Sequence record: PQ471516.1
Reading direction: 5' to 3' (one strand)
DNA length: 64,000 nucleotides
Shown: in pieces, positions 1 to 64,000 of the stretch
Layout: each line of letters starts with the position of its first letter
How positions within the stretch are numbered: position 1 is the first letter of the stretch
Made by a program: the position numbers and the translations under genes
Notes under the pieces: generated by a model
What the model saw: the letters and a program-made list of their open reading frames with translations, nothing else
What the model was told of the DNA's origin: nothing
The model's database searches: none

Positions 1-207
1 GTAAACAGTGTTAATACTGGTGACTTTGTTCACATTCTTTTATCCAACATCCGTGTTAAGGGTATTGTTGAAAGTGTTGATTCTGAAGTTCTAACTATTG
101 TTGAAGTTGATCCATACGACAATAATAAATCAGTTCGTCTGTGCATTGATGTTTCCAAAATTGTAGCACTCGGTACAGAAATTATTACTGAAGAAACTAA
201 TCTATAA
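1..207 (+). CDS. 5'-truncated small protein, possible Sm/LSm-like fold
   Basis: Frame 1 is open from the window edge to TAA 205-207: ...GDFVHILLSNIRVKGIVESVDSEVLTIVE...VRLCIDVSKIVALG; beta-strand pattern resembles Sm1/Sm2 motifs. Confidence 0.5.
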   Translation, partial: VNSVNTGDFVHILLSNIRVKGIVESVDSEVLTIVEVDPYDNNKSVRLCIDVSKIVALGTEIITEETNL

Positions 208-218
208 AACGACAATAA

Positions 219-294
219 GCGGTAATCGTATAAAGGCTATTACCTCGGTTTTCCAAACCGATGATGTGGGTTCGATGTCCCACTTACCGCTCCA
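219..294 (+). tRNA. trnG: tRNA-Gly(TCC)
   Basis: Acceptor GCGGTAA/TTACCGC, anticodon arm TCGGT-TTTCCAA-ACCGA, T arm GTGGG/CCCAC with 8-nt loop, encoded CCA. Confidence 0.93.
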
Positions 295-349
295 ACTTAA
301 GAGGATTTAATATGTTTAAAGATGAACGTCCAGATTTGTAAAATAATCA

Positions 350-378
350 TTGACTAAATAATCCAGTACTGATAAAAT
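350..378 (+). promoter_or_regulatory. sigma70-type promoter for tRNA-Ser(TGA)
   Basis: TTGACT-17 nt-TAAAAT; spacer contains CAGTACTG; TAAATA overlaps the end of the -35. Confidence 0.75.
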
Positions 379-384
379 AAATTT

Positions 385-474
385 AGTGAAGTGGCAGAGT
401 GGTTTAATGCAACGGTCTTGAAAATCGTCGAGGGTGAAAGTCCTCCGTGAGTTCGAATCTCACCTTCACTGCCA
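385..474 (+). tRNA. trnS: tRNA-Ser(TGA)
   Basis: AGTGAAG/CTTCACT acceptor, loop CTTGAAA, long variable arm, TTCGAAT T loop, G73-CCA. Confidence 0.95.
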
Positions 475-478
475 ATAT

Positions 479-560
479 CCGGGTGTATCTCAACGGTCTT
501 CTAAACCGTCGTTAATCGAGTAACTGGAGTATGCAGGTTCGAGTCCTGTCACCTGGGCCA
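479..560 (+). tRNA. non-canonical D-arm-less tRNA-like RNA, anticodon TCT (Arg)
   Basis: CCGGGTG/CACCTGG acceptor + G-CCA; ACGGT-CTTCTAA-ACCGT arm only 7 nt after the acceptor; 23-nt extra region; GCAGG-TTCGAGT-CCTGT T arm. Confidence 0.75.
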
Positions 561-581
561 ATTTTAATTTAAGGTGTATCC

Positions 582-746
582 ATGACGCATGAAGAATGGA
601 TGAATGATATTAATTTTAGATATTCGGGTATCGGTAGTTGGCGAAAATATCATTGGGAAATTATATCAGACCCAGCAGAATACGATAAACTTATAAACCA
701 TGAAGTATATCCGTGGTTCTTTATTGAAATAATGGTACGAATATGA
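582..746 (+). CDS. 54-aa MTHEEWM repeat-family protein 1
   Basis: Hand translation; AAGGTG SD; 165 nt; below the ORF-track cutoff. Confidence 0.75.
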   Translation: MTHEEWMNDINFRYSGIGSWRKYHWEIISDPAEYDKLINHEVYPWFFIEIMVRI

Positions 747-907
747 CGCATGAAGAATGGATGAATGATATTAATTTTAGATATTCGGGTTTCGGTAAAT
801 GGCTAAAGTATCATTGGGAATTTATTACTGATCCTCAAATGTACGATAAACTTATAAATGATCAAGCATATGAAATTTACTTATTTGAAATACTGGTCAG
901 AACATGA
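743..907 (+). CDS. 54-aa MTHEEWM repeat-family protein 2
   Basis: ATGA overlap with copy 1; first 16 codons identical. Confidence 0.75.
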   Translation: MTHEEWMNDINFRYSGFGKWLKYHWEFITDPQMYDKLINDQAYEIYLFEILVRT

Positions 908-1068
908 CGCATGAAGAATGGATGAGAAAACAAAAGCTAACATGGAATCCTTATTGTTACCAGTTAGACCCAAGAATGTGGGATGTGATACGTATTAAAT
1001 GTATGTACAAATCATTTCTTGGTGATATAATGGATGTTGAAGTACTGATGAATTTAGTACATCGATAA
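904..1068 (+). CDS. 54-aa MTHEEWM repeat-family protein 3
   Basis: ATGA overlap; same first 7 codons, then divergent. Confidence 0.7.
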   Translation: MTHEEWMRKQKLTWNPYCYQLDPRMWDVIRIKCMYKSFLGDIMDVEVLMNLVHR

Positions 1069-1098
1069 TAAAAATCTTATTTAAATGGGATTGATATC

Positions 1099-61409: not shown

Positions 61410-61595
61410 ATGTACAGAGACTTCTATATAAGTAAACTTAATCCTGTACTACAAACTCGTATTCCTCCGGTGAAATTTATCCTCAAAACAAAAGCACAAA
61501 TGTATGAGTTCAAAAAGTGTACAAAAGAAATACTCAGTACTAAAAGTAATAAGAACATATACTATCAAGTACTCGTCCTGACATTTAAGTACTAA
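61410..61595 (+). CDS. small protein, family H
   Basis: MYRDFYISKL...TFKY. Confidence 0.8.
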   Translation: MYRDFYISKLNPVLQTRIPPVKFILKTKAQMYEFKKCTKEILSTKSNKNIYYQVLVLTFKY

Positions 61596-61615
61596 AGTAC
61601 TAAAGGAATAAACAT

Positions 61616-61810
61616 ATGCAACACCAGCACAAATTGTACTATACACAATTTCTTAATCAACAACTACAACAATTTATACCCAATGAACCATTACCATATG
61701 ATCACCCCCTAGGTACACGCGTTTTCAAAAGAACTATTAATGAACTATTGAGTACTACCGACGACGATTCCCTGTACTACTGCTTAATTAAACTTATATA
61801 CAGGCACTAA
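61616..61810 (+). CDS. small protein, family H
   Basis: YYTQFL...LIYRH. Confidence 0.8.
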   Translation: MQHQHKLYYTQFLNQQLQQFIPNEPLPYDHPLGTRVFKRTINELLSTTDDDSLYYCLIKLIYRH

Positions 61811-61811
61811 T

Positions 61812-62006
61812 ATGCAACTCCTGCACAGAGAATACTACACACAATTCCTTAAAGAGAACTACAGAGATTCAGTTCCCGTAACTCCTTTCGACCCAAATAA
61901 CCCAAGTTCAATCTTCCTCTTTAATGACGCAACACGTACTGCACTCTGTACTACCAATAAACATTGGCACTACGCATTTGTACTTATACTTATATACAGA
62001 CACTAA
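61812..62006 (+). CDS. small protein, family H
   Basis: EYYTQFL...LIYRH. Confidence 0.8.
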   Translation: MQLLHREYYTQFLKENYRDSVPVTPFDPNNPSSIFLFNDATRTALCTTNKHWHYAFVLILIYRH

Positions 62007-62015
62007 GGCACTAAC

Positions 62016-62204
62016 ATGAATGAGCACAGAGAGTACTACATAAAGAAACTTCAATTGTACCAACAATCCTCTATACCTGAAGTTCCTTATAATATAAATG
62101 AGCACATTGGAGTAAAGATTAACTATAATAATACAGTACTAGAAATATTAAGTGCGGAAAATATAGATTACTACAATATTATAAAACTAATATATAGGTA
62201 CTAA
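62016..62204 (+). CDS. small protein, family H
   Basis: EHREYYIKKL...LIYRY. Confidence 0.8.
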   Translation: MNEHREYYIKKLQLYQQSSIPEVPYNINEHIGVKINYNNTVLEILSAENIDYYNIIKLIYRY

Positions 62205-62207
62205 ATC

Positions 62208-62393
62208 ATGCAAGAGCACAGAGAGTACTACATAAAGAAACTTCACCCAGACCTACGAGATACTATACCATTCGTTCCTCATAATATAAATGAACCTGTA
62301 GTGCAGTACTACTTTAATATAACAGTACAAGCCGCATTAAGTGAATATAGACTTGAGTACTTCACTGTACTGAAACTTATATATAAGTACTAA
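62208..62393 (+). CDS. small protein, family H
   Basis: EHREYYIKKL...LIYKY. Confidence 0.8.
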   Translation: MQEHREYYIKKLHPDLRDTIPFVPHNINEPVVQYYFNITVQAALSEYRLEYFTVLKLIYKY

Positions 62394-62458
62394 CATATTG
62401 ACATAGAGTACAGGAATGATATACTACATCCTATACAGAATCAATACAGAGATAACAT

Positions 62459-62668
62459 ATGCAAGAACATAAAGATTTCTATGTAAGCCAACTCCCCGTA
62501 CTAGACCAATTCTGGTTAGCTGATTCTACACCTTGTAATACAGATACTAAGTACGGACAACTGTGCTTTATTGAATCTATAAAGAAAGTACTACACCAAG
62601 ATAAAACTAAGTACTGTAAAGAAAAAGACTTGTACTTTAATATAGTAGAACTTACCTTTATGTTCTAG
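62459..62668 (+). CDS. small protein, family H
   Basis: MQEHKDFY..QLP; own sigma70 promoter. Confidence 0.8.
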   Translation: MQEHKDFYVSQLPVLDQFWLADSTPCNTDTKYGQLCFIESIKKVLHQDKTKYCKEKDLYFNIVELTFMF

Positions 62669-63773
62669 TACAGGATAGTATAGGATACTAAGGACTAGAT
62701 GTGTTCCTAGGGAAGCATTATAACAGGCTTTAACATCTCGTAAAGATGTTAAAATTCAGCCTGGACAAATGCGATCACTAGGATTCTATCTAGGCTGAAT
62801 CCCGTAATCACAAGTACGCATATGTAATCATATATAAACATTTCTATAATCATATCCAATCACAGTAGTGATTAGTATTGAGTACTAGAGTACAGGAATG
62901 TGCACGTTTAATCAAGAACGTATCAGAATGATTCAGTACTGTCCTAAAAGTATTCAGTACTGAAGGTGTCGATATGTCACTAAGTAGGCAGAGGAAGTCT
63001 GCCGTACTTTGTAGTTTCCAAGCTCCTTTTCCATTTTGCAAATTACATCAAAAGTAATCAAAAGTAATCACACAATGATTAGTACTGAATTATTACTTTC
63101 ACCTTAATTCCAGTTACCCCTTGAGGCTCCAGCAAAAAGTTGGTTAGTACTCCATCCTAAATCTCGATCCTAAAAATTTTGGAGTACCTATGAAATAAAA
63201 GTTGGATCTTCGAAAATTGAAATTTACGTTGGGATGATTAGGATTTGTGAACTATAATGTAGTTCAAGTTGGAGTACAGAGTGAGAACAATCTAGAGTAC
63301 TGAAAGATGAAATAACATCTTGACAATACAATTCAGTACTGTATAATGTTGTACATAGGGTGAGGGAACAGCGGCAACAGTTCCTTAATCTCAGTATCAT
63401 GTCGTGAGACATTACGCAAGTTATATCCTCCTGTGCATAGTACTGGTGGTTATCTCTTGAACCTCATTTTCTCGTAAACTAAACAGTACTGATATTAACA
63501 GAATGGTAGCAGTACTGATATTAATCTAATGCATTATGCCACCAGCACAAGCTGGTGGATTCCCTCTAACAGTATTCAGTATTACATGATGGTCTTCATC
63601 CTCCTGGGGTAACATAGTGAAGGTTATGATGGCAGTACTGAATACTCCTTTCACAAGATAGATCTATGGTATAGTACTGACGGATTTTGGGCGTAGTTAC
63701 CCTGGGTGGATTTTGGACGTAGATATGTCTAGCCCTCCAGAAGTCTGGAAGTAAAGATGGCTATCCCTCTAGG

Positions 63774-63869
63774 CGGCTGGATGGCTAGATTTCTAGATGG
63801 CTGTATGGCTAGACGTTTGGACGGCTAAACGGCTAGATGGTTACACGTCTGGATGTATAGACGGCTAAA
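63774..63869. repeat. tandem array of 12 degenerate 8-mers, consensus YGGCTAGA
   Basis: cggctgga tggctaga tttctaga tggctgta tggctaga cgtttgga cggctaaa cggctaga tggttaca cgtctgga tgtataga cggctaaa. Confidence 0.85.
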
Positions 63870-64000
63870 TCAAAATTTTTATTTTGTTTTTTCCAATAGT
63901 TCCCCTACCGCGTGGGGATAGTTTCCCCGCAGTATCTGGAGTTAGATTTTTCTGAATCTGGAATCATTATCTTATAAACTGGGGGCAATGTCAACGGCCT

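Follow-up and report, generated by a model that had tools for sequence, protein, structure and literature searches.

A palindromic AGTACT motif enriched in the GCGC-free genome of jumbo coliphage Turkey5 and in a temperate siphophage family

The window analysed here is the last 64 kb (64,000 nucleotides) of the genome record of Escherichia phage Turkey5 (PQ471516.1, 351,311 bp), corresponding to record positions 287312–351311, so that a window position is the record position minus 287311. The hexamer AGTACT occurs in it 210 times, as the core of a 14-bp, two-fold symmetric motif, TTnCAGTACTGnAA, whose copies have arisen independently and are conserved above background in related phages while turning over. 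The same motif, always coupled to a complete absence of the tetramer GCGC, is shared by the jumbo-phage lineage and recurs in an unrelated family of temperate siphophages. We tentatively read the array as a set of weakly selected recognition sites for a putative two-fold symmetric DNA reader, which would act as a label distinguishing phage from host DNA. Turkey5 is a RaK2-like jumbo myovirus of the genus Asteriusvirus, and other Asteriusvirus jumbo coliphages are 88–93% identical to it over the 6-kb piece compared, for which the match to Turkey5 itself is 100%.

The AGTACT excess and its 14-bp motif

The 210 copies compare with 21.8 expected from base composition, 23.2 under a first-order Markov model and 45.3 under a second-order one, and AGTACT ranks first among the over-represented hexamers of the window. 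Dinucleotide-preserving shuffles of the window gave 24.5 ± 3.7 copies, with a maximum of 34. The rest of the Turkey5 record was analysed besides the window, giving a genome-wide count of 1001 against 118 expected; every 10-kb bin holds between 12 and 71 sites, and the densest bins are early regions with small genes. An earlier examination of the letters of the window alone (hereafter the sequence-only reading) had proposed a strong genome-wide excess, likening it to HIP1 (GCGATCGC), the iterated palindrome of cyanobacteria. Its hand counts in two short stretches proved exact, and the Markov-corrected counts that it called for confirm that the excess is real in first- and second-order models. 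A maximum-order Markov correction leaves AGTACT at just 1.19-fold, because its sub-words themselves carry the signal. This signal grows stepwise from GTAC (2.8-fold) through AGTAC (4.6-fold), AGTACT (9.7-fold) and CAGTACT (23-fold) to CAGTACTG (54-fold). Genome-wide, CAGTACTG is present 214 times against 3.9 expected; in the window, TTCAGTACTGAA occurs four times against 0.01. The array, the two hand-counted stretches and a perfect copy of the palindrome are located in the window as follows.

1–64000, no strand: the 210 AGTACT sites that form the array, full motif TTnCAGTACTGnAA, defined by counts and a flank logo
3773–3786, no strand: 14-bp perfect palindrome ATTCAGTACTGAAT, intergenic, with a second copy at 3894–3907
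15001–16560: first hand-counted stretch, 8 sites
61201–62400: second hand-counted stretch, 13 sites, small early genes

Pooling of the half-sites gave the pattern T(-4) T(-3) n C(-1) AGTACT G n A A, with G disfavoured directly 5′ of the core. Each further symmetric base multiplies the excess, and the pattern is graded in the manner of a position-weight matrix. The left and right flanks are independent of each other (CAGTACTG was observed 37 times, against 38 expected from flank frequencies), and flanks past ±4 bases carry zero information. Since nothing is conserved beyond the four flanking bases, the copies are independent creations that arose by point mutation, and not a pasted repeat; a dispersed repeat or mobile mini-element of the REP or MITE type was rejected on the independence of the flanks and on the single substitutions by which relatives differ. 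One-mismatch variants of AGTACT stand at 0.67–2.84 times expectation and are mostly still enriched (AGTATT/AATACT 1.31-fold), which is not the depletion looked for as a sign of a HIP1-type signal or a repair drive. The distances between sites are exponential (Poisson-like) with a mean of 351 bp; the periodicity that the sequence-only reading suggested looking for was therefore not found, and periodic spacing or clustering was rejected.

The sites fall in every coding frame and in non-coding DNA, as had been claimed: 162 are coding, distributed 74/46/42 over the three frames, where they encode S-T, x-Y-x and V-L, and the remaining 48 are intergenic, at 5.9 per kb compared with 2.9 per kb in coding sequence. 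Synonymous shuffling within genes gave 54.7 ± 5.8 coding sites against the 162 observed (z 18.6), a control using global codon usage gave 40.3, shuffling of codon order gave 28.4, and shuffling that preserves the codon-junction dinucleotide gave 114.7 ± 6.3 (z 7.5). It had been allowed that the excess might vanish on codon-aware correction; it persists in all four types of shuffle. Codon choice changes with context. The dipeptide S-T is written AGT-ACT 74 times against 23.6 expected, while T-S is written ACT-AGT only 7 times against 17.8; V-L is written GTA-CTN 68 times against 30.2; and tyrosine is TAC in 40 of 43 AG-TAY-T contexts, compared with 33–39% elsewhere. The S-T and V-L dipeptides are themselves 1.4–1.6 times above expectation, and the pressure therefore extends into protein sequence. 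The AGTACT excess acts at the level of DNA and is not a by-product of coding.

A broader version of this alternative, in which the excess would follow from codon usage, from the avoidance of other palindromes or from a few repeated regulatory cassettes, is extremely unlikely. In its favour, the codons AGT, ACT and GTA are preferred, numerous other palindromes have been purged, and duplicated promoter and terminator cassettes do hold some of the sites. However, the excess survives the four codon-aware shuffles, codon choice depends on context exactly so as to make the motif, intergenic density is twice coding density, promoter and terminator cassettes cover only about 20–25 of the 210 sites (roughly a tenth), and other tolerated palindromes reach at most 2.4-fold.

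Relatives, hosts and a temperate phage family

Relatives were surveyed in samples of 40–50 kb. In comparison with slurp01 (80% identity over 23.9 kb), 50 of 80 sites (62.5%) are fully conserved, against 38% of control hexamers; with JNE01 the figures are 96% and 88%, and with Yersinia phage fHe-Yen9-04 (71.5% identity) they are 33% and 16% (p = 8e-4). Conservation of the sites in relatives, which the sequence-only reading had made a test of its proposal, is thus above background in all three. Against fHe-Yen9-04, 38 sites were lost and 35 gained, and the variants found at sites in relatives are single transitions, such as AGTATT and AGCACT. This roughly two-fold protection, with balanced turnover at constant density, is as expected of many weakly selected, interchangeable sites.

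The turnover also bears on a neutral explanation, in which molecular drive by biased mismatch repair or VSP-type gene conversion would make AGTACT without benefit to the phage. Gains balance losses, the sites differ from the variants in relatives by single transitions, and CCAG/CTGG is enriched and CTAG depleted in Turkey5, so that host repair biases do mark this genome. On the other hand, no one-mismatch neighbour is depleted, AGTATT/AATACT included, on which ground a VSP-type repair drive was rejected. The flanks are also graded and the motif is 14 bp long; the same drive would have to operate in two unrelated lineages, yet most phages of the same hosts lack the motif; and the fixed place of the motif within otherwise diverging promoter spacers points to function. 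We consider neutral drive decidedly improbable.

An AGTACT excess with no GCGC at all was found in fHe-Yen9-04 (5.9-fold), RaK2 (7.1-fold), GAP32 (15.2-fold), CBB (9.5-fold), and JNE01 and slurp01 (8–9-fold), and the trait is common to four jumbo-phage genera, Asteriusvirus, Eneladusvirus, Alcyoneusvirus and Mimasvirus. The Agrobacterium relative Atu_ph07 has AGTACT at 0.22-fold and normal GCGC, and the unrelated coliphage PaulScherrer has no AGTACT (13.8 expected), again with normal GCGC. In a 100-kb sample of E. coli K-12, AGTACT occurs 4 times against 23 expected (0.17-fold, a figure uncorrected for codon usage), and GCGC 755 times. We note that all four K-12 sites have C before the core and three of the four have G after it, resembling the form preferred in the phage; with n = 4 they are too few to interpret.

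GCGC is absent from the window, where 31–63 copies are expected, and from the Turkey5 genome, where 385 are expected. No AGTACT-rich phage examined contains it, whereas host DNA has 7–16 copies per kb. All 5-mers and 6-mers that contain GCGC are absent, and the exclusion therefore targets the tetramer itself. An origin of the motif from GCGC by deamination to GTAC was rejected, since the intermediates GCAC and GTGC are undepleted (GTGCAC about 2-fold, GCACCA about 3.9-fold). Six-base palindromes with at least four G/C are absent or nearly so, and 27 of the 64 palindromes are missing from the window, in agreement with the sequence-only reading, which had set AGTACT against the usual avoidance of such words by phages. 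The absent asymmetric words include GAGACC/GGTCTC, GGCGGA and CCCGAG. Together, the palindrome and asymmetric-word losses look like very broad restriction-site avoidance in unmodified DNA. The avoidance expected of an unmodified phage is not seen for AGTACT, which is 8–15-fold enriched where 27 other palindromes are absent; two-G/C palindromes such as GAATTC are tolerated. Neither the AGTACT excess nor the GCGC absence was found described in open-access texts, to which the literature search was confined.

Two scans of IMG/VR, with the 14-bp palindrome and with paired CAGTACTG, extended the comparison to viral contigs. Among the contigs listed, at least 48 are AGTACT-rich and GCGC-free, none is AGTACT-rich with GCGC, at least 7 are GCGC-free only, and at least 126 have neither trait; the number of lineages carrying the trait is likewise at least two. 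Besides jumbo phages, the AGTACT-rich contigs comprise siphophages of about 34 kb, a family whose members have a large serine recombinase and a head module resembling that of lambda. Leclercia chromosomes carry integrated members of the family (head-protein identity 88% and 74%), and a diverged subgroup lies in another enterobacterial chromosome, where the flank is syntenic with E. coli mepS-pdeN-yejA. In E. coli itself no match was found among 5,426 complete genomes. The prophage analysed is the following.

DAIQCE010000001.1 (Leclercia sp. metagenome-assembled genome), about 1,615,900–1,649,900: AGTACT-rich prophage of about 34 kb

This prophage has complete sets of head and tail genes and also encodes a large serine recombinase, a SegE-like GIY-YIG nuclease and a lysozyme. 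It has no recognisable repressor or replication module, and its non-structural genes, about 12 in number, match no known family. It contains AGTACT at 14-fold, CAGTACTG at 137-fold, and no GCGC against about 63 expected, and its flank logo is the same as that of Turkey5. The signature ends within about 1 kb at both prophage ends, outside which GC content rises from 0.40 to 0.56–0.64 and GCGC to 9–16 per kb. Coding sites again exceed synonymous shuffling (109 against 28 ± 4.4), and the hexamer profiles of the prophage and Turkey5 are correlated, with r = 0.66 for all hexamers and 0.79 for palindromes. When all open reading frames of Turkey5 and the temperate family were compared by blastp and phmmer, the sole protein in common was a T4-type lysozyme, and no shared reader protein was found beyond it. 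The possibility that the temperate elements are satellites using jumbo-phage promoters is unsupported, as TATAAATA and TGAAACG-type promoters are missing from them and their promoter spacers lack AGTACT.

Possible readers of the motif and competing explanations

The reading that we tentatively favour would work as follows. About 1000 independent copies of TTnCAGTACTGnAA would be held dense by weak per-site selection that bends codon choice and even dipeptide content, each copy putatively being recognised by a dimeric protein that binds or processes DNA. The array would label the DNA as non-host, given 2.9 sites per kb in phage DNA against about 0.04 per kb in E. coli, and the second half of the label would be the lack of GCGC, of which the host has about 7.5 per kb. 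Where sites lie in the spacers of some early promoters of the host sigma-70 type, their occupancy may modulate early transcription, most plausibly as a shut-off. We infer from these patterns that a protein reads the motif, which genomes might encode it, and what its binding would achieve; the candidate encoders are Turkey5, the enterobacterial host and a co-infecting phage. The motif recurs in unrelated phages that share no candidate protein, and the reader may therefore not be encoded by Turkey5. This recurrence points to something that both kinds of phage meet in common, either a protein of the Enterobacterales host or the machinery of a co-infecting phage.

Several observations weigh against this reading. 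No candidate reader has been identified: the 114 window proteins are almost all without known domains, and scans of these and of the prophage non-structural genes with Pfam and PHROGs gave no candidate for DNA binding or modification. Only two lineages with the trait were seen among the matches listed, which speaks against a universal host factor as the source of a benefit, and the host genome is motif-poor and not motif-rich, on a depletion figure that is uncorrected for codon usage. The motif is not placed in promoters in the temperate family, so that the promoter role is specific to jumbo phages, and its use in terminators is mostly that of one duplicated cassette. A biased conversion process would likewise produce conservation above background. 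The sequence-only reading had called the array a genome-wide self mark. A mark of this kind is still the best general reading, modified by the constant coupling to GCGC absence and by the recurrence in unrelated temperate phages without a shared reader.

A more elaborate proposal is that AGTACT richness and GCGC absence are two halves of a sequence-encoded system of self/non-self DNA discrimination; we regard this as speculative and on balance unlikely. If it were true, a GCGC-directed nuclease would destroy host DNA, where GCGC occurs once per 70–150 bp, and spare the GCGC-purged genomes, while AGTACT-rich DNA would be positively selected, protected or organised by the reader of TTnCAGTACTGnAA. 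The temperate siphophages would then either meet the same machinery or mimic the jumbo-phage 'self' label, in the latter case surviving superinfection or hitch-hiking on it.

The methyltransferases of Turkey5 bear on a different alternative, namely that the AGTACT sites are targets of sequence-specific DNA modification (methylation or other) and so form a functional mark in the sense in which HIP1 goes with methyltransferases. Turkey5 encodes two such enzymes, both conserved across the jumbo-phage lineage. The first is a C5 DNA methyltransferase of 286 amino acids (record 276796–277656, about 10 kb upstream of the window), which is conserved in RaK2, CBB, GAP32 and the Asteriusviruses, has homologues 45–50% identical in rV5-like phages and ICP1, and has a 50%-identical homologue in PaulScherrer, the phage with zero AGTACT. 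Its best matches among solved structures are the catalytic domains of the eukaryotic DNMT3A and DNMT3B. The second is a small N6-adenine enzyme of the Dam family, PF05869 (record 55185–55712); PF05869 enzymes are classically GATC-specific or non-specific. The search for a GTAC methyltransferase that the sequence-only reading recommended gave no recognisable candidate; the two enzymes of the phage are DNMT3-like and Dam-family. AGTACT is a ScaI-type restriction site, of which an isoschizomer, Eco255I, comes from E. coli; a thousand unprotected copies look risky, and another coliphage avoids the word fully.

RaK2 DNA has been reported to be methylated, but as m5CpG (PMC3622015). Virion DNA of fEgEco12, a related Asteriusvirus, was cut as predicted by ten ordinary enzymes, including EcoRI, HindIII, ClaI, NruI and SmaI (PMC13070987). 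The temperate family carries the identical motif with no methyltransferase detectable by Pfam or PHROGs, Turkey5 tolerates other two-G/C palindromes such as GAATTC, and the one-mismatch variants are undepleted. The link to methyltransferases that had been suggested is thus unsupported, and modification is an improbable explanation of the array.

About equally improbable is that the sites are places where an enzyme cuts, nicks or passes strands, with many scattered sites speeding the handling of the 350-kb genome; candidates would be the phage type II topoisomerase, an endonuclease seeding recombination-dependent replication, or a nickase. A palindrome of 6–8 bp is typical of enzymes that act on two strands, A-GTAC-T is compatible with a 4-base staggered cut, dense random spacing suits a locally acting element, and Turkey5 encodes topoisomerase II subunits, Mre11/Rad50-like and UvsX/UvsY-like proteins and endonuclease VII. 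However, the temperate siphophages have the same motif and none of these topoisomerase, recombination or endonuclease VII enzymes, cut sites would tend to vanish by gene conversion in mixed infections, and the graded flank preferences resemble binding energy more than all-or-none recognition. A strong DNA gyrase site was rejected, since the published E. coli motif is a 130-bp degenerate pattern of phased GC and not a hexamer (PMC6379681), while the phage motif is 14 bp long without phased flanks. The recombination hotspot named by the sequence-only reading was considered in the form of a Chi-like site, which does not agree with a motif that is palindromic and rare in E. coli (0.17-fold).

The flanks likewise decide on SlmA, a nucleoid-occlusion factor that Enterobacterales carry. 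All of the hosts are Enterobacterales and the Agrobacterium relative lacks the motif, so that the sites might mimic SlmA-binding sites (consensus GTGAGTACTCAC), activating or titrating the factor and blocking division. AGTACT is indeed the core of the SlmA-binding site, but that site requires G1, T2, A4 and G5 and a purine at position 3 (PMC3020112). In the phages, the base before AGTACT is C in 45–64% and G in 3–10% of sites, the third base before it is T, and the second shows no preference; GTGAGTACTCAC has 0 copies, and GAGTACTC has 14 against 214 of CAGTACTG. An identity with SlmA-binding sites was accordingly rejected on the flanks, given zero exact GTGAGTACTCAC and no preference for G and T at positions 1 and 2, and mimicry has hardly any probability.

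Among known systems, the resemblance to HIP1 claimed by the sequence-only reading is substantial. Both have a palindromic octamer core, occur in all coding frames and in non-coding DNA, and are conserved above background, at similar densities (one AGTACT site per 230–350 bp, and about one HIP1 site per 250–1000 bp). Elhai is said to have linked HIP1, in 2015, to methyltransferases acting on its sub-motifs. HIP1 is a trait of cellular genomes, whereas the carriers of AGTACT are phages with motif-poor hosts, and, unlike HIP1, the AGTACT motif has no cognate methyltransferase found, has undepleted one-mismatch variants and is coupled to GCGC absence. With the uptake sequences USS and DUS and with Chi the motif has in common hundreds to thousands of copies, weak per-site selection or drive, a shaping of peptide content and possible inverted pairs in terminators. 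Those sequences, however, are asymmetric and abundant in the host genome, while AGTACT is palindromic and host-rare, with no known uptake or RecBCD-like reader. SlmA- and Noc-binding sites are similar as scattered palindrome arrays read as double-stranded DNA, and SlmA shares the AGTACT core. The flanks required by SlmA (G, T, purine) are absent or disfavoured in the phage motif, which has a 20-fold higher copy number on a genome 13 times smaller.

The stoperators of Cluster A mycobacteriophages are also many copies of one protein-binding site, some of them overlapping promoters. They are asymmetric, oriented with transcription and mostly intergenic, with about 25–35 per genome, whereas Turkey5 is a lytic phage with about 1000 palindromic sites, mostly intragenic. 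In T-even phages (hydroxymethylcytosine, Alc, endonucleases II and IV) there is likewise a dense mark missing from host DNA together with a converse lack. The T4 mark is a chemical base modification, while the difference in Turkey5 lies in plain sequence, AGTACT-rich and GCGC-free, and the nuclease and reader are putative.

Unmodified phages are thought to avoid short palindromes, and here a jumbo lineage and an unrelated temperate family enrich one and erase another word. If the motif is read by a protein, a single oligonucleotide would give a simple experimental handle on it. Such a reader would bear on the means by which phages that lack base modification tell their DNA apart, organise it or protect it, on the timing of early transcription, and on the old open problem of how unmodified phages degrade host DNA selectively. 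In practice, high AGTACT with zero GCGC serves as a classifier for viral contigs and marks prophage borders to about 1 kb.

Promoters, terminators and local clusters

Genome-wide, 12–15 of 65 strict promoters of the sigma-70 type carry the motif in the spacer or at its edge. AGTACT starts 7 nt before the -10 hexamer in 10 of them and 8 nt before it in 2, giving the form TTGACA-N9-AGTACT-G-TATAAT with the site at about -19 to -14 and the remainder of the spacer variable. In GAP32, which belongs to another genus, the motif has the same promoter position. The motif thus behaves as an element of fixed position in these promoters, yet they hold only a small share of the sites. The claim that sites lie in promoter spacers is true for five promoters in the window, at this one place:

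350–378, plus strand: early promoter of the sigma-70 type, TTGACT-N9-AGTACT-GA-TAAAAT, upstream of tRNA-Ser(UGA) at 385–474
1461–1489, plus strand: early promoter of the sigma-70 type, TTGACT-N9-AGTACT-GA-TATAAT, upstream of tRNA-Ser(GCU) at 1496–1585
30189–30217, plus strand: early promoter, TTGACA-N10-AGTACT-G-TATAAT
32638–32665, plus strand: early promoter, TTGACA-N9-AGTACT-G-TATAAT
63320–63347, plus strand: early promoter, TTGACA-N9-AGTACT-G-TATAAT, with a 12/12 match to the consensus hexamers

The first two belong to a cluster of six tRNA genes at window 219–4443 (Gly-UCC, Ser-UGA, Ser-GCU, Asn-GUU and two Thr-UGU), in which both tRNA-Ser genes have promoters bearing AGTACT. tRNA-Ser(GCU) reads AGY, and AGT is the commonest serine codon here.

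AGTACT also occurs in terminator stems, as had been noted, although largely in the repeated intergenic cassettes of one gene array. Genome-wide, 11 of about 120 sites with a hairpin and T run bear the motif, and terminators as its general home were rejected, since these are essentially the cassettes of the RCC1-like array. The hairpins in the window are the following.

42699–42717, plus strand: terminator hairpin GCCAGTAC-AAA-GTACTGGC, followed by a T run
43976–43995, minus strand: terminator hairpin GCCAGTACT-NN-AGTACTGGC, with two AGTACT 8 bp apart, between RCC1-like paralogues
46581–46600, 47803–47822, 51463–51482 and 52714–52733: paralogous copies of the GCCAGTACT-NN-AGTACTGGC hairpin

The RCC1-like array (window 42724–58420, minus strand) consists of 14 tandem genes, nearly all of them for paralogous beta-propeller proteins, with annotations such as HERC1 or 'regulator of chromosome condensation'. 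Between most of these genes lies one and the same terminator cassette, with an A/T-rich stretch after it.

Non-coding clusters of sites, also described in the sequence-only reading, exist at the end of the record:

62881–63678: 12 non-coding sites clustered at the record end, about 15 per kb

Adjoining this cluster, at window 63724–63843, are GGCTA-type repeats with a period of 8 bp (GATGGCTA, GACGGCTA and similar). These repeats belong to roughly 2 kb of non-coding DNA running across the junction of record end and record start, and the array may be an origin, a packaging-related or a genome-terminus signal.

Two further words deviate in Turkey5. The T4-type late-promoter word TATAAATA is strongly depleted (13 copies against 73 expected), as it would be if it served as a functional signal and were excluded elsewhere. 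Copies of true Chi (GCTGGTGG) number 23 where 2.6 are expected, an enrichment of about 9-fold; nine of these cluster in the early region at record 6.6–19 kb, and others lie at window 17797 and 63538–63557. The orientation of Chi tends to match the direction of transcription, and the Leclercia prophage has 3 Chi in its 34 kb.

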